From assembly GCA_964270895.1 (NCBI GenBank), contig OZ185444.1: a DNA stretch of 64,000 nucleotides. One strand, 5' to 3'. The translations under genes were made by a program, and so were the position numbers. Below the pieces are notes generated by a model. The model worked only from the letters and a program-made list of their open reading frames with translations. It searched no databases and was not told the origin of the DNA. Every line of letters begins with the position of its first letter. Positions within the stretch are counted from its first letter, which is position 1. This DNA is from Podarcis filfolensis (Eukaryota). Shown here one piece after another: positions 29,801-50,852 of the stretch.

Positions 29801-31625
29801 CTGTAAATAATGAACGAACAATAAATTCAGAGGGTAAGAAATTTAAGAAAATGGAAGTCGTGGAGCCATAAATGCAAAGGTCAAAACAAACTGCAACATG
29901 CTTAGTTCAATCCATAGTAGTATGAAGAAAACGAAACAGTGGCATTACATAATATTGCCTTCAAACCAATTTCATATAAAGCAGGAATTGGGGAACCTGA
30001 GACCCTTCAGATATTAACTCTACAGCCCCCATCAGCCCCAGCCAGCATGGCCAGTGGTCAGGGATGATGGGAGTTCAGCAACATCTGGAGACTTGAAGTA
30101 GGGGTGGGTTATGATATATTGATATTTTGTCTCTTACTGCTATGAACTCCAGACCGCAATAAATGTTTCATATTTTTTTACCCTGTAATATATTGAGAAT
30201 GCACTGCCCAGCTTGCAGGCAGGAAGCAACACTTTACTGCAAAGTAAAGGCCATGTTTTTTGCCTGCCCAATCTGCAAGGCATAAGCCCATGCCGCCTCC
30301 CAGCTGGCGTTGCAGAGTAAAAGGCTTTACTTTGAAGTAAAAGCTGCTTTCTGCCTGCAAAATCTGTAAGGCGTAAGACAGACCCAGCATAGCAATAAGC
30401 TTCCCTGCCAAGGGAGGGAGATTCTGATCAGCAAATATCCACGTGGCTTTGCTCTTGCTTTTGTTATGCAGGTTGGTTTAAGGCACACACCTCACTTCTT
30501 GCTAGGCAGAATAGAGACCCAGCTTCCTGGCTGATCTGATAAGCAAACAATGTTTCTTTCCCCCTCATAAGATCCACATGACAGAATAGACACCCAGCAT
30601 ATTATCAGGCTAAGCAGACATTAGAGTCTCTACAAGAGCCTTGTGGATCTTATTTGCTTGCTTATAGGAATCTTTGGTCCTCAGCAGTGCTGTGGACAGA
30701 GAATCGGCAAACAAAGTTTCTTCTTCCTGATACGATCAGTTTGGCTTGGCTTGGCTCCTGCTTCTGTACAGGCAAGGAAGCAACAATTTACTTTTGCAGT
30801 AAAGGCTTTGTGCATTTGGAAACTAAGATGCGGACGATGCTGATGACTGGGCTGCTGCCGCCAGTTCAAATTTTAATTGCTGGTTTTAGATATATAGTGG
30901 TGCATTTTAAGTATTGTTTTTTAAGCAGTTTGTTTTTATTATTCTTTGTTCTATGACTGGTGTTTTTAAATGTTGTAAGCCGCCTTGAATTTCAACTTGG
31001 CAGGATATAAATATGTTATATAATAAATAAATAAAATAATATGAGAGGCAGTGGGGTGGAAGAACCCATGGAAGGCTTTTCACTCAGCAAAGTAGTAATG
31101 GGCTGGTAACACATTTAATATTTCCAGCAGAAACAAGTCATGCCACATTCAAAGTGGTGGACAGCTTCTGTGCATCCCTAGCAGCAGCAACCAGCACACC
31201 ATATATACTTTATCTGTAGCCTAGTTTTTACAAAGGTGATGAAGTCATGTCTGGGCTACACCATTTTAGACCACAGGTGGGAGTTAATAAGCCTGAATAA
31301 TACCTGCATGAAAGTGAGCCCATAAACAGGTTTACAAACTCAAATGAGAACCAGATCTGCAGAGGGCAAAAAGTAATTTAGCTTCTTCTGTGTCCTCTCC
31401 CACACTCTAGAACTAGAGGGCTATGTTCAGGCTAGAAAAACACAGTGAATTCTAGAGAAAATTACGACATTGGTTGAAGAAACAGCAGCACATCTTGGAA
31501 TGTTCTAGCATTTCTTTAAAGTTATTGTGTATCTCACATTTGTCTTCTGAGACCACTTAGAGGTGTCGTATTCTATAGCCAAAAGGCTGGAGATGGTAGG
31601 TTTTCTATTCTGGAAAGCAACTCAC

Positions 31626-31721
31626 CTTAAGAGACTCCTTCTTTGTGAGCTTGGTAGTAGAGGAGCTGGGGGAGGAGGCAGTGATGTCCTTCTCAGAGCC
31701 ATTATAAAGCTTAGATTCTGA
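31626..31721 (-). CDS. OSBPL8: OSBPL8 coding exon 5
   Basis: SESKLYNGSEKDITASSPSSSTTKLTKKESLK, 96 nt. Confidence 0.96.
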
Positions 31722-32624
31722 CTGAAAATATACATAACACAAGGAAATAATTAATGAAGGATTAGAGCAGTTGCTGTTCAGTCAAACTTCAAGTGAAACA
31801 TAGAAGCTACAAGTTTTTCAGATTGCTGCTTGCTCCCTTTATGTCGCTTCATTTAATCAAGGCATAGAAAGAGCTTGTAAATGAATCCTTCGTGTGGTAC
31901 TTCAAAACATTGGCTTCTTCTGTCATATCATTTAACAATAACCCAGTTTGAAGAAAGGAGTCAAAAACTTGACATTGTCCACTGAGCTTTACACATGCAA
32001 ACACAAATAGCTTTTCTTGTCCAGTGCCACCTACACACTTACTTACCCCCTGGCCCCTCAAGTAAAACATGGAATTTCTCCAGACTAAGATCTGCTCCCT
32101 GAATCTGTTATATCGGTGTTATTCAAATACATTATTATTTCCCCAAAACACCCTAATTCTAGAGATCCATAACTTCACCTCACTTAAGTGCCTTTACCAC
32201 TGAAAATATTTCTTTATTAAACATGCTGCTGTGGCATCACATGGCTTTTATTTATCCTGCCTTGAAAGTTCTAAAAATGGTTTCTCTGCATGTGCCACCC
32301 AATAGCTTGGGGGGGGGGCTGGTTGAGAATGACAGATGAACCCTGCAGAGTTGCAGAGCTATTCTAGCAGTCTATCATCACTCAACATTGGTTGATAATG
32401 TAACCAAGTTAACTCATTAGGAACGTCTCAGCATCTTGTACTGACTAAAAATAAACTTTGGATGAGTTACAAGGCATTTGTTACCCTGTATAGGAAAACA
32501 CGTTTTATTGACACAAATTGTTTAATACTGAGATGCCCAGGAGCCAGCCAAATCTGCTGGCTAAAATTAAGGCTATTCCCCCCCCCCAAAAAAAACTATT
32601 TTACTAAGTTTTCAGAGACAGACA

Positions 32625-32661
32625 GAGGGAGGGAGGGAGGGAGGGAGGGAGGGAGGGAGGG
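32625..32661. repeat. (GGGA)n microsatellite
   Basis: About 9 tandem GGGA units. Confidence 0.9.
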
Positions 32662-32869
32662 AAAGCGAGAGAGCACACACATAAACACCCACCAATCTCA
32701 AGAAAATGAGACAAAAACTCTAATCTACCAAGCTCAGCCACATGTACACATACGAAAGTACATACTTTCTTAACCTGGATTTGGCACAGTGAAAGCTTTG
32801 GTCACCTTGGCTTTTTATTTGTATGAGGAGAGGAACTCCAACGTTGTTGCTTCTCCTTGAGCTCTCAAT

Positions 32870-33242
32870 GGCTCTTCATACCATTGACCATGGTATCCTC
32901 ATGGACTGGCTCCATTAAACAGAAGTTGGAGGCAGTGTATTACTGTGGTTCTGTCCCTATTTGATGGCCCAAGTTTAGAGAACCGCTCTGGGAGATTTCT
33001 GTTTGTTCCCATGGAATTATATTGTGGGGATCAATTCTGTCTTCCATGCTGTTTAACACCTAAGTGAAGTCATTGGGTGCCATCATCAAAGGATTCTGGA
33101 TGAGTCATCATCAAGGCACTCTGCTCTATATCTTTTCCAACAGAAGCAGATGAAGCTGTTCAGAAGCTGAACTTGTGCCTGGGGTGGGGACGAGTGGGTG
33201 GTCTGGATGGGAGCCAAAAACCAAGCCTGAACCCTGAGAAGC
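32870..33242 (+). mobile_element. Degraded L2-type LINE reverse transcriptase fragment
   Basis: Broken frames read HGIL..WL..VGGSVLLWFCPYL..GSILSSMLFN..LGAII..HQ..LYI..WMGA..LNPEK. The YADD catalytic segment is deleted. Confidence 0.7.
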
Positions 33243-33875
33243 GTTCTATGGCTTGGTAGTTTGTATCTTGTTCAAGTGTGAGTTGCACTCACCATAAAAC
33301 ATATAGCATGTAGTACAGTAAAACCCGCAACTTACCTGGGGGCTATGTTCTGGGGATTGCGCCTAAAACCAAAATCATGTATAGTCAAAATTCATTGGAT
33401 TCAACGGCAGAGAGGATTGCCAAAGTCATTTTCCCCAGAACCCCATCCCCTTTCTATTTTTTAATTGACATGCATGTAAAGCTGAATGTGCACAAGTGAA
33501 ATGCACATAAATTGCAGGTTTACTTGTGGATTCTACCTTGTCATTGGAGGCTCCAATGCCTATTGCCAGCTATGGCTAGTTCATCTAAAATAATATGCCT
33601 CATACTTAACCAAGTAGCTAATAGAATTCACCAAAGGCCCACTGCATCTCCTGAGCAGCCCTCACTTTTTTTCACAAACTGGCTTTAAAAACAAATATTA
33701 GTGCTTGTTTTTGTGCTATAACCAAAGATTACACATAAACATAATTCACCTTACTATTTAAAATAAGCCACAAATGAGATAGGTAGGGAAAAGATTAAAT
33801 TAATTGCAACTACGTACCCAAGCTCACTTAGATGCATCAAACTGAACTATGCTGTCTGAAGGTTAAGGTGCTCAC

Positions 33876-33946
33876 CTTGCTTTTTGACATTGATTGTGTA
33901 GAATCATCTTTACTTTGTGAGGCATCATCCTTCCCTCTGTCAAAAC
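33876..33946 (-). CDS. OSBPL8: OSBPL8 coding exon 4
   Basis: GFDRGKDDASQSKDDSTQSMSKSK, 71 nt, phase 1 in, phase 0 out. Confidence 0.95.
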
Positions 33947-36292
33947 CTTGAAGAGAAATTGAAATGGTTTCAAAAAATCAGTGTATCCCATATGCCATTA
34001 AGGTTGAAATCCTAAATAAGTCAAAGCTATTAAAACTCTGACCAAATATACTTAGGGACATGGTGTATATGTCACCATTTGTTCACCAAATGTTTTTGTA
34101 ATTCCTTTACAACTAGGATTTTTTTTGTTTAATATTAAAGCCATGTTGTGTGAGACCTAGGGTCCAAAAGTGGTTATGTTCCCAACCTACAAAGTTCCAA
34201 GCATGAATGGTAGTTATCAACCCTGTCCCAATTTAATGCATTTGTATTTTACCTTCCAGGCATTCAGAGCTACCTCAATTACTCAGTTATATGAAAATAT
34301 CCAACTACAGTACTAGTAGCACGTAGCACAACATAGATAAGCACAGAGAGTTTCAGTCCACGGGAGAACTGGCTTGCCAGCCCAGCCCCAGGTTACAGCA
34401 GTTCCAACAATGCAAAGCCTTCTCATCAGGCATCAGAAAAATAAGATGGAAGTGGATCTAATAATAAATTCATGATCGAGTAAGCCGCTAGGATTAGGCA
34501 TTATCATATTCACACCATACCACCACACACATCCAGGGATGTGAACTAATCAATGGAGCATAAAACAGAATGAAGCAGAGCTTGTGCAAAGCCAAGTAAG
34601 GAGAGTAGTGCTAACAAGCCATTTCTACTCCTTGTGTTAATAAAGGCAGATCGGAGTAACCACAAAGCGGCAAGTGAATTCACTTATCTTAATCAGAAAT
34701 TCCTCAGCAAAGTATTAGCTGCAAATGTTATCTTCCTGGTAAACTTACCAGGAGCTTGGGAAATTCCCTAGAACAATTTGGGATTAACTGAGATTTGGCA
34801 GCAACTTCTACATGCACAGCCTGTATGTGTCCAAATGTCTTTGGACATTTGTATGGGCAAGGGCCAGTGCGCAACATCTTACTGCTCCAAGCATTCATGT
34901 ACCTTGTGATATGTCTAGAGAATGGGGCTCATGACACCATAATTAATGTCTAGGGTGCTCTACTCTTCATACAAAGTCAGTGAGCAAGTTACACGCACAA
35001 AAACTGGTTTTAAAAAAGAAAGAAGGAATGTGAATCAAATGCCAACCACTGACATATTCAACAGCATGAAATTCATAACAACAGATACTGTGTTTCCCTC
35101 GCCCAGATAATTCATCTAAAAGGCTATAATTAAGGTAAGGTTGCAGTACCTAAGTTAACTACACTGTCTTGCATTTGAGATCTAGCACACATACATCTCA
35201 CTTTGTCATCTGTGAGTATTAAACCACTCTAAATGTCAAGCTGGACTTTTAGTAAGATATGGCAAAAACTCAGTAAAAATAACAACATACTTCCTTACAA
35301 GAGTTGTTATGCAACTTACTGGCTTGGTTCAGATATCCTGAAAACCAAACTATGAAAAGGAAACATGCAATGTTGTGGTCACATTCAGAACTCTGCAATA
35401 AGTGATTGAAGCTGCAGTTATACAAGTACAGCAAATCTGCTTGTCCTTTGTTTTGTTGTATAAACGTTTATTACTTACACAAAAAAACATGAAAAGAGGG
35501 AACATTATTTCTAGTTTCCAGGGGATTCACATCATGTTTGTGTTGAAACTACTAACCACAAAAGAAGAGGTAGACAACTAATAGGTACATTAAAATGCAA
35601 TTAGCTTGAAGGTTGCAATTGTCTTAAATAAATCAATTTTTACAGTAGTACTAACTCACACATTTACAGTAACCTTGCAATTGTGCATTTTCAAGACTGA
35701 TCAAGTCCATTAGAACCAATGCAAACTAGATTACAACATTATGAGTATTTCCAAGTTATTATTTACATTATTAAGGAATGTAAGGATTAAAGGACACAAC
35801 ACTGATTAACATGGCCTCAAATTTTACATTTTAAGATTACTTCTAACAGTCAAAAGTCCTGCTGTGTTGTCTACTCCAGATTTCAAAAGGACCTGCACCT
35901 AATTAGAAGCCATGTTCCGTTTACTTGAAAATCATTTGGTTGTAGATTCCAGTATGTTGAAAATTCTCTTAAATTGCAGGTAAGAAAGACACCACCCATA
36001 TTCAGTCAAGTATCATTCTCATTATATAATATCAGCATCATCATCATCATGTACAATCCCACGCAATCTACAATGAAGCACTTCGTTCTTAATGCTGAAC
36101 TTAAAGAAAGCGCTGCCCAAGAACACATGCCAACCATGAATCATTATTTCCAAACCTCATTTTATTTTATTCAACGTGAATCCAAGTGCTTTTTCAGCTT
36201 AGAAAATTGCTTTTTTTAAAAAAAGTGGTATTTGTAGAAGCTTTTACAATAAATATTTTCATGAGAACATTAAAAAGTGAGACAAAACAAAC

Positions 36293-36428
36293 CTCGGAAG
36301 ACTGGTGAAAGTGCATTGTATCCTCCGAATGAAGCATTCCGGACAAGTTTCCGACCATCAGCCCGTGGAGGCAGCGAAACTCCAGCACATGAAGAAAACC
36401 TACGTCGCTGTGGACCTTCTGCCTTCAT
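36293..36428 (-). CDS. OSBPL8: Alternative first coding exon of OSBPL8 encoding an ORP5-like N-terminus
   Basis: ATG-initiated, 45 codons + 1 nt: MKAEGPQRRRFSSCAGVSLPPRADGRKLVRNASFGGYNALSPVFR|g. Donor GAG|GTTTGT is phase 1, matching the 33946 acceptor. Aligns to recalled ORP5 MKEEAFLRRRFSLC...PQKVDPRKLTRN. Confidence 0.8.
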
Positions 36429-38949
36429 GAGTTAGATGCTCTGTATAATGATTATTTTCATTCAGAAGGATGACGGGAATAAGAACGTTGCAGAAAGTCT
36501 TTTCCCTTCACATTCAGATTAGCAGCATGCAAGACCCACAAAGATCAAGTGCCATGTGCACGCTTTGAACAAGGAGAGATGCCAGAGGCTATTGAACTTT
36601 GTAACCAAGCTAAGAGATGTTTATGAATTCAATCCAAGCTGCTACCATTCCTCCATCAATAACATGTCATATTTCAGTCAGCATGCCCCGAGACAAGCTG
36701 TTACTCTTCATTGTTTTGCAGGCACCAGACAACTGTCATGACAAAGTACATCAGAATGGAGGAGTTATTAAAGAAATTCCTTTGCTGCCTAATCATTCAA
36801 GTTCTATTTTATTGCACACAGAACAATTATGAGTATACTTCTAAAATTCACTCAAGAAAATTAAGAGTACTACTGAGAATCAGAGAAGGAATTTCCATTA
36901 AATGGAAACCCATTTCTTTTCAGTACTTTTTATTGTGGATTAAATAGCATTTGCCAGCAAGAACTCACATAAATGGCCCTGAAAGAAAAAGCACTGCTTC
37001 TGAATGCAGTATTAGGGTACATTTTAGAAGGCAGGCACTAACTCATATCATTTAAGCAATACCACCAAACAGACCCTTGCCAAAATAATTTCTGATACAG
37101 GAGTCAGAACTTCCGTCAGCAATTTCCAGAATTTAGTACAGAGTAACAAGTATCAAAAAAGTGTAAAGTGTTTATTGATGACTTTGCTTTTTAACATAAT
37201 TAACAACTCCAGAGAAAGGGGGTCACTTTTTCATTAAATAGTTTGACATGTTTTCAACGTGTTTAAATACAAGCTATGGTATTTGCTCAACACTATACAA
37301 CAACAATACTCAATAAATATAAGTAAAAATGTTATCTTTAGAAACCACAGGCTAACTCTTTTAATGGAAACAACTGAAACAGAATTTAAGCTTAAAATTT
37401 CATTCAAAATTTTGCAAGCATTTGAATGCTTCATTTGCTCATCATGCAAATTAGTTAGGTGGTCAGTTTTGCCTGCTTTCCATTCGAAATGTCTAACTTT
37501 ACACAACATTTTTAATTAAAAAAACCCTTCCTAGTCAATTTCCCCTTGCTTTGATGAGTCATTAAAAAACAACAACAGATATTCTATAGCTGAGAGCCAA
37601 GGTTGTTTTTTAAGCCATCATTTTGCCTGAATTCATGAAATGAAATATAGCAAGAAATCTAAAAGCTTGTACAGTGGGGGGGGGATTAAACCAATAAAAT
37701 ACTTTTCTTATATTAGATGATGATCAAGAAAAGTCTTAAGATTTCAAACTATTTAATCTCAATGACTAACAAAACAGAAATGACTTGGATCCAACTATTT
37801 GTACCATATAAATCTGGCAACTGTCAGGTTTAAGCTATACAATAAAAATATATTAATTTACTATATTTTTATCCTGCTTTTCAGACAATTACTGTCTCCC
37901 AAAACGGCAAAGAGAGAGAGTGAGTATGTGTGTATGTAAAAGAAGGGCCCACCATCATTCTATTCATATTCTTTTGGATCTCATGCTTTTCATTACTAGA
38001 TACCAAATGTTCTGGCCCATTAACAGAACACAAACCACTAATATATCCCTCCCTGACCTGATGGGAATCCTCATCCTCTGAGCTCACACAGAAGGTCACA
38101 CACATCCTATTAGACTCCTTTCCCTCCTGCCTGCTTTTCCAGTATAGAAGCAAGACAGTGCCAACATTCCAAAGTAAGATATTCTGCTTTGGATACCTTT
38201 CATACATCTCACTCTCAATTTCTCACGCTGTATGTGAAATCCATATAACTCTACATATGGACACAGCTTAGATCCCCTTAACAGCTAGAAAACTGTTAAC
38301 TGAAAGCTATGACAGAGCTTAGTTCTCATAGGTACAATCTGTTATAACCTTTGCACCACAAAGGCTCGCATTATATTTTTTTCACTTTAATAATGGGAAA
38401 TGTCATGCTATTTAAAAAGAAAAAAAGGGCAGTTTGACTATTTATTATAATGATACGTATTATAATATTAACACACCCACAGAACCTGCTCTTGAGCATA
38501 GGGATCTAAGAACGGAACTTGAGGTTACAAGAGAAACAATGGTTTCCTTAGCAACAGCAAAGTGGGAAAGGGAGGCACCTGAAGGAGAAAATCAGTGGGG
38601 TGGGGGAATAATAGTATTTAATCCGTTCTCTATTCACGAGTTCTACCCTACAAATCCACACACACACACACCCCAACTGGCTACTTAAAATTTGTATCTC
38701 CCCAGCCAGGCCATGAAACAGGAAATAAGCTCAACGGAGAGAAAACCAAGAACATTTGTGAAAATAAATCACCCTGCATGGGAGGATTAAGCACCCCCCT
38801 CCCTCTTGCCACTGACCCTCCTTGGTAAGTGCCTTTTACCCTATAATATGCTTGTTAGCCATGAAAACACTAATGGACGGTAAATATTCAAAAAGGAGTG
38901 CACCCCAAATCTGTCATATGGTTTAACTACTCAAAAAAAAAACAAAAAA

Positions 38950-50714: not shown

Positions 50715-50852
50715 CATGGCCATGGACTGTTCCTGGACTAAATGATGGCTGCTGTAGATCTTTGGTTGGAGTAAGATAGCCTTCTTTTCCTTGACGCTGG
50801 CTCATCTTTCCTGGACTCAGAACATGAGCTTCATCGTTGTTTGTTACCACAC
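50715..50852 (-). CDS. OSBPL8: OSBPL8 coding exon 3; contains Met43 (ORP8S start, ATG at 50805-50803)
   Basis: SVVTNNDEAHVLSPGKMSQRQGKEGYLTPTKDLQQPSFSPGTVHGH, 138 nt. Confidence 0.95.

Follow-up and report, generated by a model that had tools for sequence, protein, structure and literature searches.

An alternative coding exon of OSBPL8 homologous to the ORP5 N-terminus, and a probable third form of ORP8

ORP5 and ORP8 deliver phosphatidylserine to the plasma membrane and take phosphoinositides in exchange, and the strength with which each of the two resides at ER-plasma membrane contacts is both central and under debate. From its family, ORP8 is expected to end in a C-terminal membrane anchor, and additional OSBPL8 isoforms that differ in their N-termini are listed for human. 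In the searchable ORP5/ORP8 reviews and primary papers to January 2026, the forms of ORP8 are still counted as two, ORP8L and ORP8S, and one of these papers notes as many as three bands in western blotting. ORP8L associates less with the plasma membrane because of its acidic first 42 residues, ORP8S is intermediate and ORP5 is cortical, at ER-plasma membrane contacts (PMC7356933, PMC5624964); the weak cortical binding of ORP8L has accordingly been ascribed to its acidic N-terminus (PMC7356933, PMC5624964, PMC12962173). Ghai et al. attribute tethering by ORP5 mainly to a coiled-coil/polybasic stretch together with the PH domain (PMC5624964).

The window analysed here is a stretch of 64,000 nt of Podarcis filfolensis DNA, the minus strand of which carries OSBPL8, the gene for ORP8, as read from the exons that it encodes; all gene features given below lie on that strand. 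The canonical upstream exon (VVTNNDEAHVLSPGK-MSQRQGKE...HGH, hereafter the MSQRQ exon) occupies 50852-50715, with the ORP8S ATG at 50805, and is followed by an intron of 16,768 nt (50714-33947), in keeping with the 16.8 kb first estimated from the letters. Downstream of the intron stands a shared exon at 33946-33876, (G)FDRGKDDASQSKDDSTQSMSKSK, which opens with FDRGKDD and whose acceptor is common to the MSQRQ exon and to the alternative exon described below. RNA joints and loose ends at 33946/33947 mark this acceptor, and the loose ends at 33947 have a consensus that, once reverse-complemented, gives the 3' end of the MSQRQ exon. The next constitutive exon (SESKLYNGSEKD...KKESLK) lies at 31721-31626, as defined by joints at 31721, by its translation and by a GTGAGT donor. 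The polybasic stretch that precedes the PH domain is encoded by minus-strand exons reading KKNYREEKKRATKELL... and IRGTLKSWTKLWCVLKPGVLLIYK...ERPSKKDGFCFKLFHP, fish proteins with the same exons carry PF00169, and the OSBP fingerprint EQVSHHPP is present, split by an intron into YYIAEQ at ~19.5 kb and VSHHPPISAF at ~17.76 kb. The host gene thus has both the polybasic-PH arrangement and the EQVSHHPP fingerprint looked for in a member of the ORP5/ORP8 subfamily.

The start of ORP8L can be followed here in part. The sequence-only reading of this DNA had described residues 1-42 of ORP8L at this locus as acidic. Among these 42 ORP8L-specific residues, the last 15 (VVTNNDEAHVLSPGK) are verifiable in the window, while for residues 1-27 no acidic ATG-led exon was found on the minus strand between 50.9 and 64 kb; nor is there a CpG-island-like stretch on that strand between 50900 and 64000. 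Exon 1 of ORP8L probably lies beyond the window.

Inside the 16,768-nt intron lies a further exon, here called exon A. Its coding part (36428-36293, 136 nt) starts with an ATG at 36428-36426, comprises 45 codons and one further base and closes in phase 1 at a GT donor (36292-36291, GAG|gtttgt), so that the coordinates and phase originally proposed are exact. The predicted peptide is MKAEGPQRRRFSSCAGVSLPPRADGRKLVRNASFGGYNALSPVFR, with the 9 K/R and 2 D/E that had been counted, and NASFGGYNALSPVFR is an example of a tryptic peptide to be expected from it. The CpG richness noted earlier also holds: the 136 nt contain 8 CpG, a density of 5.9 per 100 nt, and the intron around them has 0.79 per 100 nt. 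Joined to 33946-33876 across an intron of 2,346 nt, the frame stays open and reads ...SPVFR-G-FDRGKDDASQSKDDSTQSMSKSK, the in-frame continuation (...SPVFR-G-FDRGKDD) that had been predicted. The start context at 36428 is weak (C at -3, A at +4). Taken bare, such a frame is unremarkable, because the same intron harbors 19 ATG-led frames, each 120 nt or longer and closed by a phase-1 GT; exon A is set beyond chance by its RNA junctions, its conservation and its match to ORP5.

Four RNA runs (X1, X5, X9 and X21) were mapped on 31500-37400. The junction from 36293 to 33946, named beforehand together with dN/dS of the exon as a way to check the isoform, is present in three of these runs, which come from three studies and two organisms; the joint falls at 33942/36289, equivalent to 33946/36293, with GT..AG ends on the minus strand (CT..AC on the plus strand). 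X5, from organism A, has it in a 470-nt contig at a depth of 9.2, the canonical junction being in a contig of depth 43.1, and X9, from the close relative organism B, in a 553-nt contig at a depth of 50, against 12.7 for the canonical junction. Raw X21 RNA-seq gave two reads with the exon A junction versus 11 canonical ones, recognized by loose ends that match the MSQRQ exon at its 3' end; the control junctions 33876/31721 are present in the same raw reads. The exon reads of X21 all have one orientation (first mate on the plus strand), as expected for minus-strand RNA in most stranded libraries. Among the contigs seen, the MSQRQ exon and exon A are mutually exclusive. With its junction in X5, X9 and X21, exon A is used in RNA, as a minor form in two samples and as the major one in X9. 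In X1, a 408-nt contig (36218-36625, depth 11.7) covers exon A and crosses the donor unspliced for 75 nt; the intron around it is nearly uncovered, AATAAA-like strings occur ~120 nt further on, and the contig could reflect intron retention or an early transcript end.

The exon A contigs of X5 and X9 lie on 36289-36733/36735 and place ahead of the ATG a leader of 304 nt (36732-36429), preceded by an acceptor AG at 36734-36733. The leader holds 10 upstream ATGs, each of which begins a short uORF, 2-15 codons long, that terminates ahead of the main ATG. The X9 contig extends past 36735 by 81 letters, and the 30 shown match 38061-38090 uniquely, which places the 3' part of an upstream non-coding exon (exon U) at 38141-38058, with a GT donor at 38057-38056 (CAG|gtcagg). 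Exon A had been proposed as a first exon selected by promoter choice. It is indeed the first coding exon, but it is the second or a later exon in the transcript of organism B, in which the contig runs from 36732 into the exon ending at 38058 rather than starting at exon A as an alternative first exon with its own promoter would; with this splice to an upstream exon, promoter choice stays a proposal. The layout may differ in other species, since the exon A acceptor is absent from two loci of one species (L003 and L004) considered below.

We explored the conservation of exon A by a word-index search with the 45-residue peptide, limited to proteins 0.55-1.75 times as long as the query, which returned four ORFs on genomic contigs of other species, 73-82% identical to the exon A peptide and diverging right after the donor. 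DNA identity is 72-81% over exon A and 28-54% in the 136-nt flanks on either side, and the donor with the next 6 bases is 88-100% identical in five other loci. Indels in exon A are all in frame (6 or 9 nt), variable sites are distributed 16/11/28 over the three codon positions (chi-square p = 0.016), with an excess at the third, and pairwise dN/dS is 0.12-0.47 at dS 0.33-0.9. Judged from these alignments, purifying selection acts on the frame in both tetrapod-like and fish loci of OSBPL8. Synteny is kept as well: in other vertebrates exon A lies between the MSQRQ exon and the FDRGK exon, with the FDRGK exon ~300 nt downstream of exon A in L003 and exon A ~345 nt downstream of the MSQRQ exon in arowana. 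Thirteen exon A sequences, from fish to tetrapod-like, are invariant at R9, R10, S12 and K27-L-x-R-N-A-S-F-G-G36. In the species with the two loci L003 and L004 (regions L003:749-952 and L004:893-1096), ATA replaces the ancestral ATG and a new ATG stands six codons later, just before RRRFS (MRRRFS...); the acceptor AG and most of the upstream ATGs of the leader are absent there.

Gene models or ORF calls from sturgeon (P0005), tuna (P0010) and arowana (P0018) run the MSQRQ exon into exon A in one frame, and in arowana no stop separates the two. These fusions are either read-through predictions, or exon A is an internal coding exon in some fish. Such an internal position, suggested by P0005 and P0010, was rejected for the window, because in-frame stops stand directly 5' of the exon A ATG.

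The relationship with ORP5 had been suggested beforehand and is borne out by direct comparison. BLASTP aligns the exon A peptide with peccary ORP5 without gaps from Met1 to the exon-end Gly, with 24/46 identities (52%, E = 2e-12), and hhalign, run with 13 exon A sequences against 11 ORP5 N-termini, gives a probability of 99.3% and E = 3e-20 over 46/46 columns. P0039 and P0032, which look like human or primate ORP5 N-termini, were left out of all alignments and comparisons. A profile built from five exon A peptides was searched against 1.84 billion representative proteins (E <=0.001) and yielded 43 matches. The top 19 are exon A in further species, with sturgeon, arowana, turbot, tongue sole and tuna among the ten looked up by name; the other matches, 22 of 24 of which were read, are ORP5 N-termini at E = 2e-7 to 3e-4 library-wide, and among the source names looked up for these are 'ORP5-like' and 'Oxysterol-binding protein', in birds, mammals and fish. 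In ORP5, the first coding exon (residues 1-46, MKEEAFLRRRFSLCPP...SPG) has the same length as exon A, the same start at Met1 and the same phase-1 Gly end, and GKD follows soon after that Gly, as the earlier comparison had also stated. Exon A accordingly has the attributes of an ORP5-type N-terminal exon: ~46 residues, MK-E at Met1, RRRFS-x-C, D-x-RKL-x-RN and a phase-1 Gly at its end; GG-x-N-x-L is a further set of columns common to the two. The paralogues differ in that ORP5 has RNL-x-x-G-x-x-N where the ORP8 exon has an invariant RNASFGGY, and in that this type of N-terminus is constitutive in ORP5 but one of three alternatives in ORP8. On this evidence exon A and the ORP5 exon are homologous over their whole length. 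Since the exon occurs in both paralogues, the simplest history, and the one that the sequence-only reading had favored as retention of a pre-duplication exon, would be inheritance from the common ancestor of ORP5 and ORP8; no outgroup sequence was found.

The exon is not hidden, as had been thought, and the question whether it is annotated in some species is answered by fish gene models. The RefSeq model XP_016367567.1 from Sinocyclocheilus rhinocerous (213 aa, 'oxysterol-binding protein-related protein 8-like') already carries exon A with the same junction, ...LPG|FDRGKEE..., and so does A0A8C1H1G1 from Cyprinus carpio, a full-length UniProt entry of 874 aa that begins with the exon A N-terminus and belongs to the same 90% cluster. 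In KAF0029515.1 from turbot (180 aa), exon A is joined to ORP8 exons and the FDRGK exon is skipped. These models, in which exon A is followed by ORP8 exons as in the window, are orthologues with automatic names and without functional study. A literature search that included conserved peptide strings found no paper on exon A, on a third ORP8 isoform or on an alternative promoter. The exon A form is therefore already known at the level of catalogues, at least for fish, and functionally uncharacterised; as automatic fish models contain it, what is gained here is attention and an evolutionary reading, not the discovery of a sequence.

Given the RNA junction, the purifying selection, the position between the MSQRQ and FDRGK exons and the end-to-end homology with ORP5 exon 1, we consider it very probable that exon A (36732-36293) is a genuine alternative 5' exon of OSBPL8 and that the ATG at 36428 starts a third form of ORP8. 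Transcripts in which exons U and A take the place of the MSQRQ exon would start translation at 36428, so that 45 residues paralogous to ORP5 would replace the N-terminus specific to ORP8L or ORP8S and would be followed by the shared exon at 33946 and by the rest of ORP8, with its polybasic stretch, PH domain and lipid-transfer domain. Translation of the ORF is predicted. Against this interpretation of exon A stand the 10 upstream ATGs of the leader, the weak start context, the presence of only 2 junction reads in the raw data and the unspliced X1 contig, as well as the loss of the ancestral ATG in the species of L003 and L004, which must start six codons later.

The exon A form belongs to the same gene as ORP8L and ORP8S and has the same exons from 33946 onwards; it departs from them solely in the N-terminus, in which ORP8L and ORP8S share the MSQRQ exon that exon A replaces. 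Exon A, with its 9 K/R and 2 D/E, has a net charge of about +7, compared with about +1 for the ORP8S-specific segment (3 K/R, 2 D/E) and with the acidic extension of ORP8L. A charge of this size could shift ORP8 towards an ORP5-like binding of the anionic plasma membrane, and phosphorylation at RRRFS and RKL(V/I)RNAS, both of which we take from consensus motifs to resemble basophilic-kinase sites, could tune that binding. It is a reasonable prediction that the exon A form would bind the plasma membrane better than ORP8L and ORP8S, because the acidic start of ORP8L lowers binding, ORP8S is intermediate and ORP5 is cortical. The prediction is tempered by the fact that the coiled-coil/polybasic and PH region, the main determinant of tethering in ORP5, is common to all forms of ORP8. 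We would put forward, tentatively, that the exon A form is the ancestral ORP5/ORP8 N-terminus kept as a tissue-selective, ORP5-like form that resides strongly at ER-plasma membrane contacts, perhaps gated by phosphorylation; such a form could also explain the third ORP8 band on western blots. If so, ORP8 would have three settings of membrane affinity and not two.

The interpretation of exon A as the start of a translated, membrane-binding form has to be weighed against three others. That the frame is a chance intronic ORF without biological role has next to no likelihood: although the intron holds 19 frames of comparable design by chance, the junctions in RNA from three runs, the conservation and purifying selection, the significant library-wide profile matches, the hhalign result with ORP5 and the annotated fish proteins with the same junction refute it. 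We also think it improbable that exon A is spliced mainly for regulation, reducing ORP8 output as a uORF-laden 5' region or by breaking the frame, with an ORF that is no significant source of protein in this species. The leader with its upstream ATGs and weak start context, the splice to a further upstream exon and the minor share of the exon A junction in two of three runs would fit such a role; a non-coding exon, however, would not be expected to show the codon-position bias, the low dN/dS and the frame-preserving indels, nor a conservation that reaches from fish to tetrapod-like loci and stops exactly at the ATG region and the donor. Exon A is, moreover, homologous to an N-terminus that is translated in ORP5, none of the short uORFs reaches the main ATG, and neither most of the upstream ATGs nor the acceptor are conserved in L003 and L004.

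The remaining alternative accepts a translated isoform and differs on what its N-terminus does. What matters might be not bulk charge but a short linear motif that ORP5 shares (RRRFS-x-C, D-x-RKL-x-RN), serving for docking or regulated by phosphorylation, for instance in partner binding or kinase-controlled recruitment; this is conceivable, and we regard it as somewhat doubtful. The most conserved columns of exon A are motif-like and not simply basic, RRRFS-x-C, D24, L28 and R30-N31 are common to exon A and ORP5, and published tethering by ORP5 lies beside the PH domain, not at the extreme N-terminus (PMC5624964). On the other side, a literature search with the peptide strings found no partner or phosphorylation data, and ORP5 lacks the Ser of the RNAS motif; as ORP5 has RNL at this place, the RNAS part is specific to ORP8. 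The invariant RRRFS and RKL(V/I)RNASFGG blocks suggest that a regulated motif may act in place of bulk charge or alongside it.

A conserved and expressed third form would be a natural chimera, with an ORP5-type N-terminus on an ORP8 body, that could be used to probe the contribution of the extreme N-terminus. Such a form could also be relevant to work on ORP8 that relies on knock-down, antibodies or single isoforms.

Three minor observations concern the region downstream of exon A. An optional microexon of 27 nt, encoding AQSPEHSPQ in frame, lies between the shared exon and the next exon (33362-33336); its joints (31721/33336 and 33361/33875) occur in runs X1 and X21, its splice signals are clean (ttttag|...CAG|gtaagt) and the reading frame is kept. 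The X1 contig (depth ~100) contains it, as do 3-4 of ~13 raw X21 reads. The only match of a 5,112-nt X9 contig (depth 46) in the mapped region is 41 bases long, at 32871-32911, with unlike sequence on both sides, and is probably a shared repeat fragment or an unrelated transcript. At 33897, 19/19 raw X21 RNA reads and the X1 contig have C for T on the plus strand (A>G in the transcript), a synonymous change of ACA to ACG (Thr); the variant is most likely a polymorphism relative to the assembly and less likely RNA editing.
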